Sequence record: LC727701.1
DNA length: 64,000 nt
Strand: one strand, 5' to 3'
The notes under the pieces were generated by a model that was given only the letters and a program-made list of their open reading frames with translations, was not told the origin of the DNA and ran no database searches. The position numbers and the translations under genes are program-made. The number at the start of each line of letters is the position of its first letter. The stretch's first letter is position 1. Shown piece after piece: positions 38,253 to 57,673 of the stretch.

Positions 38253-39353
38253 ATGAATTATCGTAATAGCAAACTTACGTTAGTCCAGCAGAAGTGGATT
38301 GATCGTTTTATCTCCATTGCTATGGAGGTTGATAATGGCCGTGCAATTTCCAATGCATATCGCTATACTCTTAATGAACAGGGAATTAGTTCAGATAGTG
38401 AAGATCTACGTATTCACTATCCTTTTGGAGTTGATAGAAAAGAATTCATCAAAGAACAAATTTACAAACTATGTGATGAAGTTATAAGCCCTTTAAATCT
38501 GAAAGCATTCAGAATTAGTGGTGGTTTTGCATTACTAGATGATGAAGGAATCATTGGTTTCCTAATGAATGGAATGGAAGGTACCACTAGTCAGAACTTT
38601 AGATTATACTCCAATGAAGAACTGATCAAAGTATTTAAATTACGTTTTGAAGAAGTATTTGATCAGACTCGTCCACCTAGTATTAAAAGAATTCGGGTTA
38701 ACTATCAAAATAATGAACTATATAGCTTTAGTGAAGTTATTTCTGTTCGTAACTACAATCCAAATATGATGGAAATGTATCCATTCCTAGATCGATCTCC
38801 AGCTGAAATCTGGACTGAATTCGCTGCATCTGAATCTAATGTTCTACTATTGATTGGTCCTCCTGGCACTGGTAAGTCTAATTATATCAATGAGATTATT
38901 CGGGCTCGTGGTTATAATGATCGTAATGTGTATCTAGCTGATCAAGATGATGTACTTGGCCACGCCGGTTTGACTAATTTTATTCGTGGTGTTGAGGATA
39001 ATTCACTCATTATTACAGAAGACTCTGATAAAATGGTGGCTAAACGTGTAGATGGTAATAGTAATATGTCAGGGCTATTAAATGCTACAGCTGGTCTAGT
39101 ATCTACTAAGACCAAGATTATCATTTCTACTAATCTTCCGACTCTTCGTGATGTTGATGAAGCTTTAGTTCGACCTGGCCGTGCTTTCGATATTCTTACC
39201 TTCAAAACACTTACTGCTGAACAAGCGATTGCAGCTCGTTTAGCTAATGGTCTAGATCCAGTTGAGTTTGTCGGTAATAATCTTACTTTAGCTGAAGCAT
39301 TGAATACTAGTTCTTGCAGTAGCCCACGCAAAGCAAGTCGTGTAGGTTTCTAA
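38253..39353 (+). CDS. AAA+ ATPase (gp208-like)
   Basis: GPPGTGKS Walker A, IITED Walker B, STN sensor 1, DEALVRPGR arginine finger. Confidence 0.9.
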   Translation: MNYRNSKLTLVQQKWIDRFISIAMEVDNGRAISNAYRYTLNEQGISSDSEDLRIHYPFGVDRKEFIKEQIYKLCDEVISPLNLKAFRISGGFALLDDEGIIGFLMNGMEGTTSQNFRLYSNEELIKVFKLRFEEVFDQTRPPSIKRIRVNYQNNELYSFSEVISVRNYNPNMMEMYPFLDRSPAEIWTEFAASESNVLLLIGPPGTGKSNYINEIIRARGYNDRNVYLADQDDVLGHAGLTNFIRGVEDNSLIITEDSDKMVAKRVDGNSNMSGLLNATAGLVSTKTKIIISTNLPTLRDVDEALVRPGRAFDILTFKTLTAEQAIAARLANGLDPVEFVGNNLTLAEALNTSSCSSPRKASRVGF

Positions 39354-50362: not shown

Positions 50363-50392
50363 ACCAGCCCTTCGGGGCTGGTTTATTTCATC
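50363..50392 (+). terminator. Intrinsic terminator, UUCG loop
   Basis: ACCAGCCC-TTCG-GGGCTGGT then TTATTT. Confidence 0.85.
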
Positions 50393-50395
50393 TAG

Positions 50396-50713
50396 ATGAG
50401 AATCTGTGGGTTGCAAATGTATAAAGTATTTGTTATATCAATGATAACACTAACAGCTATATCAACATGTGTAACTTTCATTATTAATATAAAAAATCAT
50501 TATATTCACTGGATGGGTGTTTATAAGGTTAGATATGTATTAGATAAAATGCCCAATGGCATAAGTTATTTTTTCTATCAAAATGCTGTCCAAGACATTA
50601 TAGATAAAGAATCATCTAAAATAACAAATCAACATATTTTTACATCTTTTATTTACGATATCAACTCATTGATTATATTAAAATGTAATAATAGGGAAAC
50701 AGCAAATGAATGA
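50396..50713 (+). CDS. Small membrane protein (~98-105 aa)
   Basis: Hydrophobic VFVISMITLTAISTCVTFII segment. Confidence 0.55.
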   Translation: MRICGLQMYKVFVISMITLTAISTCVTFIINIKNHYIHWMGVYKVRYVLDKMPNGISYFFYQNAVQDIIDKESSKITNQHIFTSFIYDINSLIILKCNNRETANE

Positions 50714-51738: not shown

Positions 51739-51760
51739 TTTATTTAAAGGTAATACAAAT

Positions 51761-52669
51761 ATGCTTAAGGTAAAATCATTACTCACTGGCCATATTCTTC
51801 GAGCTACCTATGATTGGTTTCTTGAGAATAACTTCAGAGATATTCTAATTGTAGCACATACTCAATTAGTACCTGATTTATCTGAGGTAGCTCTAAAGCA
51901 TGCGAAAGAAGATCACACTATCACTTTCAATATCCATCCACGCTGTGCAAAGAATTTTTATATCAGTGACGAATATATCTCTTTCAATGTAACAGTAAAT
52001 GGAGTTGGGGTCAGTATTAAACTTCCTCTTTATGCAGTATTGGGTGTAGTTACACCTATTGATGATAATTCTAACGCATTCTTTGAAATGCCGCTAGTAG
52101 ATAGATATCTCAATGCAGATACTATTCGTGCAACATTAGAAGGAACTGTTAATAATGCAGTTGACAAAAACCCAGTATTAACTACCGTAGGTAATGTCAC
52201 TGAGGTTAATTTTAAAAATAAAGCCGATACCGCTAATGGTAAGTTAGTTGTAAGGAATACATCTGAGAATGAGCATGATCAGATGATTGAAAGCGCCATT
52301 AACAAAGTAACTGAATTTAGTAATCCAGAATTAGATGCACATATTAGAGTAGCGGTAACTGCAATTAAACAGAATGCACCAGAATTGATTATGGATTGGT
52401 GTGAGCGGGTTATTAATTGTACACGTAATGAAAACTATCAGGATAACATCAATGTACTTATGATGGAACTTCTCAGTTACCCTATTTCAAATGTGGTCAG
52501 TGAATCAACTGTTGACTCGGGCGACGATACATCTAATTCATTTGACAATGATGTAAATAAGATGGTTGAGGATTTCAATAATTCTTCCAATTCGCAGGTT
52601 ATTATTAATAAACCTTCTCGTCCTACCGGTCCACCAAAACTCACTGTTATTAAAGGTGGTAAGAAATGA
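51761..52669 (+). CDS. sspB: SspB-like ClpXP adaptor with a long linker and ClpX-binding tail
   Basis: ILRATYDWFLEN..ITFNIHPRCAKN..ISFNVTVNG..LPLYAVLG matches the SspB core; C-terminal RPTGPPKLTVIKGG resembles the XB motif (RPALRVVK). Confidence 0.85.
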   Translation: MLKVKSLLTGHILRATYDWFLENNFRDILIVAHTQLVPDLSEVALKHAKEDHTITFNIHPRCAKNFYISDEYISFNVTVNGVGVSIKLPLYAVLGVVTPIDDNSNAFFEMPLVDRYLNADTIRATLEGTVNNAVDKNPVLTTVGNVTEVNFKNKADTANGKLVVRNTSENEHDQMIESAINKVTEFSNPELDAHIRVAVTAIKQNAPELIMDWCERVINCTRNENYQDNINVLMMELLSYPISNVVSESTVDSGDDTSNSFDNDVNKMVEDFNNSSNSQVIINKPSRPTGPPKLTVIKGGKK

Positions 52670-52923
52670 ATGCAACTTTAGCAATTCTTTTTAGTAGTAT
52701 CAGTATCGCTGGTTATCAAGCCAATGGTGCATCGCAGTCAACCGCTGAGTTCTCTGACATGGCTACTTGTTTTAGCGCGATTGAGCGCATTCAAAAACTA
52801 GCTAAAGCAAGTGCTATTCGTAATAATGTAGAGACTGTAAAAATCAGTGATGGTGTTCTATTACGTTATTTTTCTTCTAGTACTAGTAAAGTAGAACATA
52901 CTCTAATCTGTGTAAATAAATAG
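52666..52923 (+). CDS. Small secreted protein with two Cys (85 aa)
   Basis: Signal-like N-terminus; EFSDMATC..LICV. Confidence 0.7.
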   Translation: MNATLAILFSSISIAGYQANGASQSTAEFSDMATCFSAIERIQKLAKASAIRNNVETVKISDGVLLRYFSSSTSKVEHTLICVNK

Positions 52924-54065: not shown

Positions 54066-54266
54066 ATGGATCGTCTTGATGAAAGAATCGCATTCAGTGT
54101 AAGATCGTACAAAATTTTCAATGCTCTCGCCAATGGCCGAGTTCGAGCATTGATTATTAACTTTAAAGATGGTAAGGGCACGATCATGTCTATTAGCGAT
54201 GATCGCCGCCATGATAAACATCTCTGGTTCAACTGTGGACTAGTAGACAATCCAAGGATCAAGTAA
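54066..54266 (+). CDS. Hypothetical protein (66 aa)
   Basis: AAGGA RBS; TAATG coupling to thyA. Confidence 0.7.
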   Translation: MDRLDERIAFSVRSYKIFNALANGRVRALIINFKDGKGTIMSISDDRRHDKHLWFNCGLVDNPRIK

Positions 54267-55336
54267 TGGAACAATATCTTAATTCAATTCGTTTAGTTAA
54301 AGAACTCGGTGTACATAAAGGTGATCGTACTGGTACTGGTACTCAGAGCATGTTTGGTCAACAAGAACGTTATAGTTTACGTAACAACGTTCTACCCGTA
54401 GTAACTACTAAGAAAATTCATCTTCCATCTGTTATCCATGAATTATTCTGGATGCTTTCTGGTGATACTCGTGTAGATTATTTAATTGAAAATGGTGTAC
54501 GCATTTGGAATGAATGGGTTAAACCAAATACTGCGGTATATCGTGAGTTAAATCAAGAAGAGCTTGACTCAGCTATTCTAAAGAAAGTTGGTGGTCCATT
54601 TGCCCTTTATTTTCATTGTCTAGATGATGAAGTAATCATTCAGACTAGAGATGAGTTTGAAGCTTCTTTAAGTGGTGCTGAGATATTTAGCTTTTGGAAT
54701 CAATATCCAACCATTAATATCGAAGCTACCCATGTAGTTGGTGTTAACGCCGACCGCTGGAAGTTAGTATCTACTCTAGATTTCGATGAAAGTGTGACAC
54801 CAGAACTAATTAAATATGAATATGGTAAACGACTATATAAATTGCTATTTGGTGTTAAGCCTCTAAAACTCATCGGGGGTGATCTAGGTGCCGTTTACGG
54901 TAAGACATGGCGTGATCTCGAAGATACCCGTGTGATCCCAAAACACGAGTGGGCTGTTTACGAGGCACGTGGCTTTGACTTCGTAGTTGATATTCCAGGT
55001 ACTTACATGGAGAATGATCGGTGTGTTGTAACACGTCGTATTGATCAAATTCAAGACGTGATTGATCAACTTAAGACAAACCCTGATTCCCGTCGAATCA
55101 TCGTTTGTGCGTGGTCACCGCAACTCGTTGATGAACAGGCGCTCCCACCATGTCATAGCTTCTTTCAGTTCTGGACTCGTGAACTGACGCTAGAAGAACG
55201 GTATGACTGGGTCAAACTTAACGACACTGAAGCTCAACGTATTTTCCTTGAAGGTGCGCAACCGGAAACTGATCACGCACTGTGGGATAAACTTGGTGTT
55301 CCTAAACGTGCATTGAGCTGCCAGCTCTACCAGCGT
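54266..55336 (+). CDS. thyA: Thymidylate synthase, exon 1 (357 codons)
   Basis: DRTGTGT, TTKKIH, WNEW, GDLGAVYG, SRRIIV, ALPPCH, LSCQLYQR; ends at CGT before the intron. Confidence 0.95.
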
Positions 55337-56426
55337 TAAATACTAGCGCCTTCTAGGAGCAATCCTAGTCGAATAACCTATCTAAACGGGGAAACTCTCT
55401 ATGAGACAATCCCGTGCTAAATTGACTACGGTCATAAATGCCTAACGACTATCGAAACCACTCTGAGAAGAGGAAGGGAGTAGAGTAGGACCAAGTGGTC
55501 CGAAAAGGTAGGGGTCTCTTTTTAAGAGATCGTGATATAGTCTGTCCTGCATGGAGACATGCAGCGGTTTACTTAATGACTCCGCCAGATAAGGAGGGTG
55601 TTATTAATGACGTAGCTTATGTGTATTGCCTATTCACCAAAGAAGGAAAGGTATATGTCGGAAGTGCGCGAGATTTAGTTAAGCGCGTTCAACGACATTT
55701 CAGAGACCTTAGTAATTCCAAGCACCATAACTACCCATTACAACAAGAATACGATAACGGTGAAAGATTCTCGTTAAAGTACTATCGTTGTGAAAGTCGG
55801 GAATCAGCATTTACACTCGAACAGATGTGGATAACCAAGCATGAAGAAGAAGGTAACCTTCTTAATATTGGTAGACACTCCAAGGGTGGTGATAACTTAA
55901 CCAGGCATAACCTCAAAGAACAAATCATCGAGAAGCGGAGTGATACAATACGTATCAGACTTGATGAGATTGGAGCCGAGGCTCGTCAGGAAAAGTATGG
56001 TCGACCAGGTGAGCAGAATGGGATGTATGGTCGTACTCACACAGAAGAAGTTAAGGTAGCTCTATCCGAGTTACACACGGGTAACACTTACCGTCTTGGC
56101 ATTAAAGCTAGTGATGAGACAAGAGCCAGGATGTCGGAGATAGCTTCTCAGAGAACAGGCGAACGTAATCCATTCTACGGTAAAACACATTCCGAAGAAA
56201 CCAGAAAAAAGTTGGCGGATAACAAACGCGGTATAAAGCCAACTAACTCAAACAAACTTGAAGTGGACGGTGTTGTTTATTTATCCCAGGCCGATGCAGC
56301 TAAGGCTCTCGGAGTATCACAGGGTACAATAACATACCGAATTAACAGCAAGAATCCAAAGTATTCTGGTTATAAAGTCATTTAAGTAAACGGCTCAGGA
56401 TTAACGACCCTGGGTGAACATAAGAG
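55337..56426 (+). mobile_element. Group I (IA2, T4 td-like) self-splicing intron, 1090 nt
   Basis: P1 with U-G at the 5' splice site; P2 CTAGGA-GCAA-TCCTAG; core CTATCTAAACGGGGAA..GACAATCCCGTGCTAAAT; P7 GACTA (55447)/TAGTC (55538); P9 CTGCATG-GAGA-CATGCAG; 3' end GATTAACGAC..GAACATAAGAG; splicing restores LYQR|SVDTFLGKPFN. Confidence 0.95.
55576..56385 (+). CDS. Intron-encoded GIY-YIG homing endonuclease (I-TevI/I-BmoI-like); start codon uncertain
   Basis: AYVY-x9-KVYVGSARDLVKRVQRHF catalytic domain; two NUMOD3-like repeats (GEQNGMYGRTHTEE, GERNPFYGKTHSEE); C-terminal HTH (SQADAAKALGVSQGTI). Confidence 0.9.
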   Translation: MTPPDKEGVINDVAYVYCLFTKEGKVYVGSARDLVKRVQRHFRDLSNSKHHNYPLQQEYDNGERFSLKYYRCESRESAFTLEQMWITKHEEEGNLLNIGRHSKGGDNLTRHNLKEQIIEKRSDTIRIRLDEIGAEARQEKYGRPGEQNGMYGRTHTEEVKVALSELHTGNTYRLGIKASDETRARMSEIASQRTGERNPFYGKTHSEETRKKLADNKRGIKPTNSNKLEVDGVVYLSQADAAKALGVSQGTITYRINSKNPKYSGYKVI

Positions 56427-56729
56427 AGCGTCGATACTTTCTTAGGAAAACCCTTTAATATCACGTTCTACAGTCTGCTGACCCATATGTTAGCTAACCA
56501 AATGAATATGGTAGCTGAAGAGTTTATCTGGACTGGTGGTGATGTACATATTTACTCTAACCACCAAGAACAAACCGATCTTCAATTAACTCGTGAACCG
56601 AAGGTTCTACCTACCATTCGTTTTAAAGAAGAAGCTATTGGTAAAGATATTCGGGAAATTGGTGTAGATGATTTTGTTATCGAGAACTACGAATATCATC
56701 CACACATTGCTGGTAAAGTTGCTGTCTAA
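56427..56729 (+). CDS. thyA: Thymidylate synthase, exon 2 (100 aa)
   Basis: SVDTFLGKPFNITFYSLLTHMLA, GDVHIYSNH, YHPHIAGKVAV; in frame with exon 1 after splicing (457 aa total). Confidence 0.95.
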   Translation, partial: SVDTFLGKPFNITFYSLLTHMLANQMNMVAEEFIWTGGDVHIYSNHQEQTDLQLTREPKVLPTIRFKEEAIGKDIREIGVDDFVIENYEYHPHIAGKVAV

Positions 56730-56836: not shown

Positions 56837-57673
56837 ATGATTGATCCACGACATCCAGTTAGCGATGAGATGCGCGCAATCATCGATGCTGAACTTAATC
56901 GCATCGAAAAGAAATATGGTGTAAAGATTATTTATGCTTGTGAGTCCGGTAGTCGTGGATGGGGCTTTGCTTCAACCAATAGTGACTATGACGTTCGTTT
57001 CATTTACGTTAACCATCCGAGTCATTATGTTCGTGTGGATAATGAAGCACGTGATACTATTGAAGAGATGGTGTCTAAAGAACTAGACCTAGCTGGTTGG
57101 AGTATCACTAAGACTCTTCAGCTTGCTTACAAGTCTAACCCCACTCTCTTGGAATGGCTAAACTCCCCAATCGTTTACCGTAAGGTTGATCGGGACTACA
57201 AGTTAATCCGTGATGCTGCGCTAAAGCACTTCATCCCTGAATCGAGTTACATGCATTATATCTCGATGGCCAAACAAACCAAAATGCGTTGGTTGTCAGA
57301 TGAGAAAGTCCGGATGAAGAAATACTTCTATTCTCTTCGTCCTCTGTTGGCTGCAATGTGGGTCCGTGAAAGTCTGGAACATCCACCGATGGTATTCCAT
57401 GATCTACTGCCTCTTCTAACAGATCCTATCCTTTATAAACGTATCCAAGAACTGGTTAATGATAAGGTTGGGGCTACTGAACAGGATCTGATAGATCGTT
57501 GCCCTATATTAGATCAGTTCATCGATTTTCAATTGAGTCGTGAGAAACCAGACTTCGGTAAATACGAACGTCCGGACATCTATGCACTTACCGATCTAGC
57601 CTGGCATTTTGTTGACCAGTACAAGATCGACACATTCGCGAAACTACAGGGCATCGAACGAAGAAAATATTAG
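56837..57673 (+). CDS. Pol-beta-superfamily nucleotidyltransferase, YcgL/RlaP-like
   Basis: ACESGSRGWGFASTNSDYDVRFIY, DLAGW, KSNPTLLEWLNSPIVY, KKYFYSLRPLLA; AAGGTG RBS. Confidence 0.88.
   Translation: MIDPRHPVSDEMRAIIDAELNRIEKKYGVKIIYACESGSRGWGFASTNSDYDVRFIYVNHPSHYVRVDNEARDTIEEMVSKELDLAGWSITKTLQLAYKSNPTLLEWLNSPIVYRKVDRDYKLIRDAALKHFIPESSYMHYISMAKQTKMRWLSDEKVRMKKYFYSLRPLLAAMWVRESLEHPPMVFHDLLPLLTDPILYKRIQELVNDKVGATEQDLIDRCPILDQFIDFQLSREKPDFGKYERPDIYALTDLAWHFVDQYKIDTFAKLQGIERRKY

Follow-up and report, generated by a model that had tools for sequence, protein, structure and literature searches.

The window analysed here, a stretch of 64,000 nucleotides from sequence record LC727701.1, contains an open reading frame (ORF) orthologous to gp232 (PHIKZ232) of phage phiKZ, located within a co-directional block of small genes that is flanked by a virion-protein gene cluster and by thymidylate synthase (Table 1). 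The predicted product of 302 residues combines a domain with the fold of SspB, the cellular protein that tethers cargo to ClpX, with a ClpX-docking type of tail, and is read here with moderate confidence as an adaptor that would bring phage-chosen cargo to the ClpXP protease of the host. Between window positions 50500 and 54500 the sequence is 100% identical to that of Pseudomonas phage NK1 and approximately 98% identical to those of phiKZ and 45 other phiKZ-level phage records, and the 302-residue protein matches phrog_25970 over its full length with an expectation value (E) of 3.7e-210. In the phiKZ reference record gp232 has been left unnamed. The two genes differ at 14 nucleotides, 8 of the differences being synonymous and 6 nonsynonymous, and no amino-acid change falls within residues 1–127; the resulting ratio of nonsynonymous to synonymous differences (pN/pS) of approximately 0.21 suggests that the gene is under purifying selection.

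To characterize the N-terminal part of the protein, sequence, profile and structural model comparisons were combined. A phmmer search of the PDB matched SspB of E. coli and H. influenzae over residues 10–113 (E between 1.5e-8 and 5e-7), and NCBIfam models for ClpXP specificity-enhancing factors were matched at E 8.5e-13. An AlphaFold2 model built from 87 sequences gave predicted local distance difference test (pLDDT) values above 90 for residues 8–127, and when the modelled SspB-fold part was submitted to Foldseek, 13 SspB chains were retrieved at E of 5e-7 or lower with template modelling (TM) scores of 0.74–0.83, including matches of TM 0.77–0.83 at E of approximately 1e-8. These results bear out the SspB-like core that a preliminary description had placed in approximately the first 115 residues. 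Several positions that are near-invariant across the family (W19, N57, F75, G81 and P89) are retained, and when aligned with E. coli SspB the protein is most strongly conserved in its N-terminal helix; identity to cellular SspBs is 20–30% overall.

The C-terminus was compared with cellular SspB tails using a position matrix derived from 51 cellular-type SspB C-termini. With 20.9 bits, residues 290–298 ranked first of 26,372 stretches of nine residues drawn from six-frame segments of the window, for which the 99.9th percentile was 1.6 bits. When a strict pattern of seven residues (Pro, any residue, Leu/Phe, Arg/Lys/Thr/Ser, two aliphatic, Lys/Gln) was sought in the 27,820 residues of these segments, its single occurrence lay inside this ORF, and the matrix rank and the unique pattern match together place the docking motif well beyond chance. 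The same pattern was present in 43 of 89 SspB-domain matches. The reference tails were those of Salmonella SspB, which ends with the classical motif, and of the 11-residue C-terminal peptide of E. coli SspB, which competes for the ClpX N-domain and with N-domain-dependent degradation (PMC8808172). A phmmer search of the PDB with the 30-residue tail alone yielded chance matches only and was uninformative because the tail is too short for this method.

The ending quoted for the ORF in the preliminary description is present as stated, and its reading of a ClpX-docking type of tail is supported, with two refinements. The residues GGKK follow the motif, which is not at the extreme C-terminus as in most cellular SspBs, and the motif belongs to a longer conserved C-terminal module of approximately 40 residues. 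In all 13 phage-type proteins scored the best docking-motif match lies 4–5 residues before the end, a Gly-Gly-basic ending is found in all phage-type proteins examined, and most of them share a second conserved stretch approximately 25 residues upstream of the motif. The distribution of conservation along the protein is apparent from comparison with P0002, a co-linear, full-length homolog of 61% identity, in which identity is 77% in the N-domain, 47–51% in the middle region and 93% over the last 27 residues (276–302).

Between the SspB-fold domain and the C-terminal module lie two linkers and a folded helical domain. The preliminary description had assigned approximately 170 extra residues, including a helical segment, to an inserted domain; helices were indeed modelled, four of them between residues 169 and 238, but only these approximately 70 residues are predicted to be folded. 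When modelled alone, residues 169–238 gave a pLDDT of 86.5 and a predicted TM score of 0.74. This four-helix domain had no fold match in the PDB beyond generic helical bundles (best E 2.1), no tblastn match at E of 5 or lower outside 47 phiKZ-level phage records and no relative beyond P0002 among 1.84 billion representative proteins, and is thus confined to phiKZ-level phages and one metagenomic relative; neither fold nor sequence searches gave a clue to its partner. Matches of residues ~115–198 to Pfam FUR, and in PDB and NCBIfam to staphylococcal SSL7/exotoxin, were rejected as chance because they were weak (E 0.003–0.03; in NCBIfam 3.9e-5 but with 23 bits against a cut-off of 313) and spanned a region predicted to be disordered. 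Within the first linker, residues 136–144 form the second-best matrix match in the ORF, and it was here that MAFFT aligned the cellular SspB tails. This stretch lies in sequence predicted to be disordered, near the expected end of an SspB of cellular length, and may represent a relic, an additional weak site or a chance resemblance. Residues 246–275, which overlap the acidic second linker, have a net charge of -7.

Table 1. Features of the SspB-like gene and its predicted product in the window, and of AAA ATPase genes near SspB-like genes in other phages
Feature	Residues	Position	Strand	Basis or remarks
Whole ORF, ortholog of phiKZ gp232 (PHIKZ232)	1–302	51761..52669	+	ATG start, 302 codons plus stop, 302 amino acids
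Shine-Dalgarno-like AAAGG		51746..51750	+	10 nucleotides 5' of the ATG; read from sequence
SspB-fold domain	1–127	51761..52141	+	Sequence and model; N-terminal helix (8–22), then beta sandwich
Linker 1	128–168	52142..52264	+	Mostly predicted disordered (pLDDT 42–55 over ~135–167); Asn/Thr/Val-rich by composition
Weak internal stretch resembling the docking motif	136–144	52166..52192	+	Matrix 0.4 bits, rank 39 of 26,372
Four-helix domain, lineage-specific	169–238	52265..52474	+	~70 residues; pLDDT 85–94
Linker 2	239–258	52475..52534	+	Acidic, Ser/Asp/Asn-rich; predicted disordered (pLDDT ~50 over ~240–258)
Conserved C-terminal module	259–302	52535..52666	+	One helix followed by two short strands; also present in distant jumbo-phage homologs
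ClpX-docking (XB)-type motif	290–298	52628..52654	+	Matrix score, strict pattern
Basic four-residue extension GGKK	299–302	52655..52666	+	Follows the docking motif; characteristic of jumbo-phage members
BCS1_N plus AAA ATPase gene, phage D6		4352–5731 (locus L002)		Near the SspB-like gene
BCS1_N plus AAA ATPase gene, phage Psa21		4314–5678 (locus L003)		Near the SspB-like gene
BCS1_N plus AAA ATPase gene, phage RVTF4		4909–6285 (locus L006)		Near the SspB-like gene

The search of representative proteins returned 92 matches, of which 89 were restricted to the N-terminal domain and three (P0002, P0003 and P0004) extended beyond it. SspB-like genes were found to be common in large phages, mostly jumbo phages that encode chimallin. 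Carriers include PhiPA3 (gp270), the PA1C/PS119XW group, Psa21, D6, RVTF4, Noxifer, Phabio, 201phi2-1, the Serratia phages Moabite and 2050HW, a Pectobacterium phage, and Erwinia, Aeromonas and Vibrio phages. The homologs of D6, Psa21, RVTF4, PhiPA3 (gp270), the PA1C group, Moabite and a 310-kb IMG/VR contig retain both the SspB domain and the C-terminal module but have a different middle. PhiPA3 gp270 matched the phiKZ family profile through the C-terminal module only, and homology of the middle regions of the phiKZ and PA1C/PhiPA3 groups was rejected, as hhalign aligned residues 1–117 only. A wider locus search with the tail pattern recovered PhiPA3 and one 310-kb IMG/VR contig only, and no bacterial SspB relative with the phage-type tail pattern was found in 185,579 species genomes (one per species). 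A gene encoding BCS1_N plus AAA ATPase domains is found two genes downstream of the SspB-like gene in D6, Psa21 and RVTF4; a BCS1-type AAA neighbour is absent beside the SspB-like gene in phiKZ and PhiPA3, and a link to a phage AAA ATPase was set aside.

The preliminary description had treated the likeness to SspB as a fresh finding, which it is not. Annotation of such genes in phiKZ-like phages goes back to the PhiPA3 record, in which similarity to SspB is stated, and RAY gp039 has been discussed as a putative adaptor. SspB names are already attached to genes of Moabite, RVTF4, Churi and Bobae, those of Churi and Bobae being this very ortholog, and PHROG 8945 is annotated 'SspB-like'. By homology the protein is a member of this jumbo-phage clade already annotated as SspB-like.

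Several further features were observed in the surroundings of the gene. Its stop codon shares 4 nucleotides with the ATG of the next ORF, which has 85 codons (52666–52923), belongs to phrog_32080 (function unknown) and has a hydrophobic N-terminus; in the phiKZ reference record the same span is annotated as two short coding sequences, 232.1 and 232.2. A strong bidirectional terminator-like hairpin at 50363–50382, after the gp229 ortholog, has a stem of 8 pairs, including 6 G-C pairs, and is accompanied by T runs on either strand; it probably marks a transcript boundary upstream of the block containing the SspB-like gene. The thymidylate synthase gene at 54266–56729, the ortholog of phiKZ gp235, is interrupted: ORF 54266..55339 corresponds to positions 1–156 of Pfam Thymidylat_synt and ORF 56487..56729 to positions 189–266, and between these parts lie a group I intron (Rfam RF00028, 55327–55564, 69.4 bits) and a homing endonuclease ORF of GIY-YIG/NUMOD3/I-TevI type (55495..56385). 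The phiKZ thymidylate synthase gene is 1467 nucleotides long and uninterrupted. The ORF at 56837–57673 (278 residues) is the ortholog of the phiKZ gp237 nucleotidyltransferase and matches the RlaP family of DNA polymerase beta-type nucleotidyltransferases of RNA-repair pathways (E 6.9e-91). Approximately 12 kb upstream of the SspB-like gene, an ORF of 366 residues (38253–39353) contains an AAA ATPase domain (Pfam PF00004, E 3.6e-8) and has weak similarity to the BCS1-type ATPase of D6. A search of the PADLOC defence library gave no match.

By its predicted fold, the order of its parts and its tail motif, the protein is a member of the SspB family in the broad sense. The joining of a conserved cargo-type domain to a docking tail through a flexible, variable linker corresponds to the architecture of a tethering adaptor, as SspB tethers cargo to ClpX, and the reading favoured here with moderate confidence is that the gp232 ortholog is a ClpX-tethered adaptor delivering phage-chosen cargo in the host cytoplasm, where ClpXP is located. 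Through its C-terminal tail the protein, probably dimeric, would be tethered to host ClpX, with the N-terminal zinc-binding domain of ClpX as the docking site, as for the motif of cellular SspB. The SspB-fold domain, possibly together with the helical domain, would hold a peptide or protein cargo near the ClpX pore, and host ClpXP would then degrade the targets chosen by the phage. This activity is predicted to take place in the cytoplasm, outside the phage nucleus. Infected cells produce the phiKZ ortholog, which virions lack, and a tagged set of six proteins including phiKZ gp232 was mostly diffuse outside the phage nucleus and shell (PMC10449902). The RAY homolog gp039 is cytoplasmic and has been called a putative ClpXP adaptor.

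A number of observations weigh against this interpretation. The best score against NCBIfam equivalog models (NF008762 and relatives) was 48.6 bits against a cut-off of 202, and on this profile evidence the 302-residue protein is a relative of the SspB family and no equivalog of cellular SspB. The Pfam SspB family (PF04386) was matched at 24.3 bits, just below its 27-bit threshold, which is passed by P0002 (29.1 bits) and by the Psa21 homolog (39.7 bits). The protein retains 16 of 36 core columns that are conserved in cellular SspBs, compared with a mean of 27.4 (standard deviation 5.8) for cellular-type homologs, although this comparison is to some extent circular, the reference columns having been chosen from the cellular sequences, and it takes tag-contact and dimer-interface residues together. 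All phage-type proteins retain 11–16 of these columns. From this divergence it follows that cargo binding may be altered or lost. The C-terminal module was modelled with moderate confidence only (pLDDT 63–71), and its docking motif is followed by four residues, whereas 35 of the 43 pattern-bearing SspB-domain matches carry the motif at the exact, free C-terminus. Finally, the searchable literature yielded no data on binding or degradation for any of the phage homologs.

The main rival to an adaptor function is a decoy, in which the protein would dock on the ClpX N-domain by its tail and deliver nothing, shutting out host SspB and other N-domain-dependent substrates and adaptors, so that phage proteins would be protected or host regulation disturbed. 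Such blocking is plausible because the free SspB tail peptide competes for the N-domain and with degradation that depends on it (PMC8808172), and it is consistent with a docking tail that is the most conserved part of the protein relative to P0002 and ranks first in the matrix search, and with only partial retention of the cellular cargo surface. However, for a blocker the tail alone would suffice, yet the SspB-fold domain is conserved in all jumbo-phage homologs. A decoy leaves unexplained the conservation of this confidently modelled domain, free of amino-acid changes relative to phiKZ, and is considered unlikely.

The low count of retained core columns bears in particular on the possibility that the protein is a true SspB equivalent for ssrA-tagged proteins, boosting or taking over ClpXP clearance of the stalled translation products tagged by transfer-messenger RNA (tmRNA) during infection. 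The conserved fold, the N-terminal helix motif shared with E. coli SspB and the retention of the near-invariant positions would fit such a role. In cellular SspB, however, the ssrA groove and the interface of the dimer are where conservation is concentrated (PMC9963277), and the protein lies approximately 2 standard deviations below cellular-type homologs in the retained columns, as part of a divergence common to the phage-type proteins, and misses the NCBIfam equivalog cut-offs widely. A true ssrA adaptor is accordingly regarded as improbable, and the cargo of the adaptor favoured here is probably other than the classical ssrA tag.

A partner other than ClpX, such as a phage AAA+ ATPase or a component of the nucleus shell, served by both the SspB fold and the C-terminal module, is given a similarly small chance. 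In its favour are the BCS1-type AAA ATPase gene two genes downstream in D6, Psa21 and RVTF4, the co-elution of phiKZ gp232 with the shell fraction in size-exclusion chromatography coupled to mass spectrometry, and a C-terminal module that exceeds a simple docking motif in length and contains another conserved stretch. It is countered by the lack of the AAA neighbour beside the gene in phiKZ and PhiPA3, by the very strong match of the docking motif to cellular SspB tails and by the mostly diffuse distribution, not on the shell, of the tagged set including gp232. Least probable is a poison subunit that would use its N-terminal helix to heterodimerise with host SspB and so inactivate or re-aim it, heterodimer poisoning having been raised in the preliminary description, for although this helix is the best-conserved part of the E. 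coli SspB alignment, overall identity to cellular SspBs is low, the diverging columns appear to be those of the dimer interface and groove, and the specificity of the SspB dimer can be redesigned, as illustrated by the designed heterodimer 1ZSZ among the PDB matches.

Among known systems, the protein resembles cellular SspB (E. coli, Salmonella and H. influenzae; 1OX9, 1OU9, 1YFN and 8ET3) in the N-terminal fold and in the order of parts, namely folded domain, flexible linker and C-terminal ClpX-docking motif. Cellular SspBs are approximately 120–180 residues long, whereas the phage-encoded protein has 302, with the four-helix domain inserted in the linker and four residues added after the docking motif. 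Other jumbo-phage SspB-like proteins (PhiPA3 gp270, RAY gp039, Psa21 gp299, those of D6, RVTF4 and Moabite, and PHROG 8945) share the SspB-fold domain and a C-terminal module in which 4–5 residues follow the docking motif, and the Pseudomonas jumbo-phage genes also share the syntenic place upstream of thymidylate synthase; their middle regions, in contrast, have no detectable homology and lack the four-helix domain. The closest functional precedent found is Gp53 of Bacillus phage SPO1, which has been proposed to modulate a Clp protease of its host in the manner of an adaptor but acts on ClpCP (through ClpC, not ClpX), has been experimentally characterised and has no apparent sequence or fold relation (PMC6873191). 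ClpS of jumbo phages is similarly a phage-borne version of an adaptor from the host, for which a role in directing targets to a host Clp protease has been proposed, but belongs to a different adaptor family with ClpAP as partner (PMC7824862). Features that appear to be undescribed so far are the four-helix insert, the extended C-terminal module with its fixed four-residue extension and the systematic divergence of the core surface. Novelty is nevertheless modest because SspB-like genes have already been annotated in related jumbo phages.

A broader and more tentative proposal is that nucleus-building jumbo phages carry a ClpX-adaptor class of their own, in which the C-terminal module would be a two-part ClpX dock, comprising the upstream conserved stretch, a short strand and the docking motif together with the basic residues that follow it, and the middle would be a lineage-specific cargo recogniser. 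In phiKZ-level phages the four-helix domain might then select cytoplasmic host proteins, such as those of defence or regulation, or early phage proteins no longer needed, for ClpXP; redirection of ClpXP to defence proteins or regulators had been suggested in the preliminary description. The three-part layout of conserved cargo domain, swappable middle and conserved docking tail makes the idea readily testable, although its value is tempered by the likeness to SspB having been annotated already in several related phages.

In jumbo phages that form a nucleus the DNA is shielded from nucleases of the host, but cytoplasmic phage proteins and mRNAs remain exposed, and the control that these phages exert over the host cytoplasm is less well understood. 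Were the protein a blocker, occupation of ClpX would protect phage proteins. If the adaptor reading is true, a phage adaptor acting on host ClpXP would provide a direct route by which chosen host or phage proteins could be removed.

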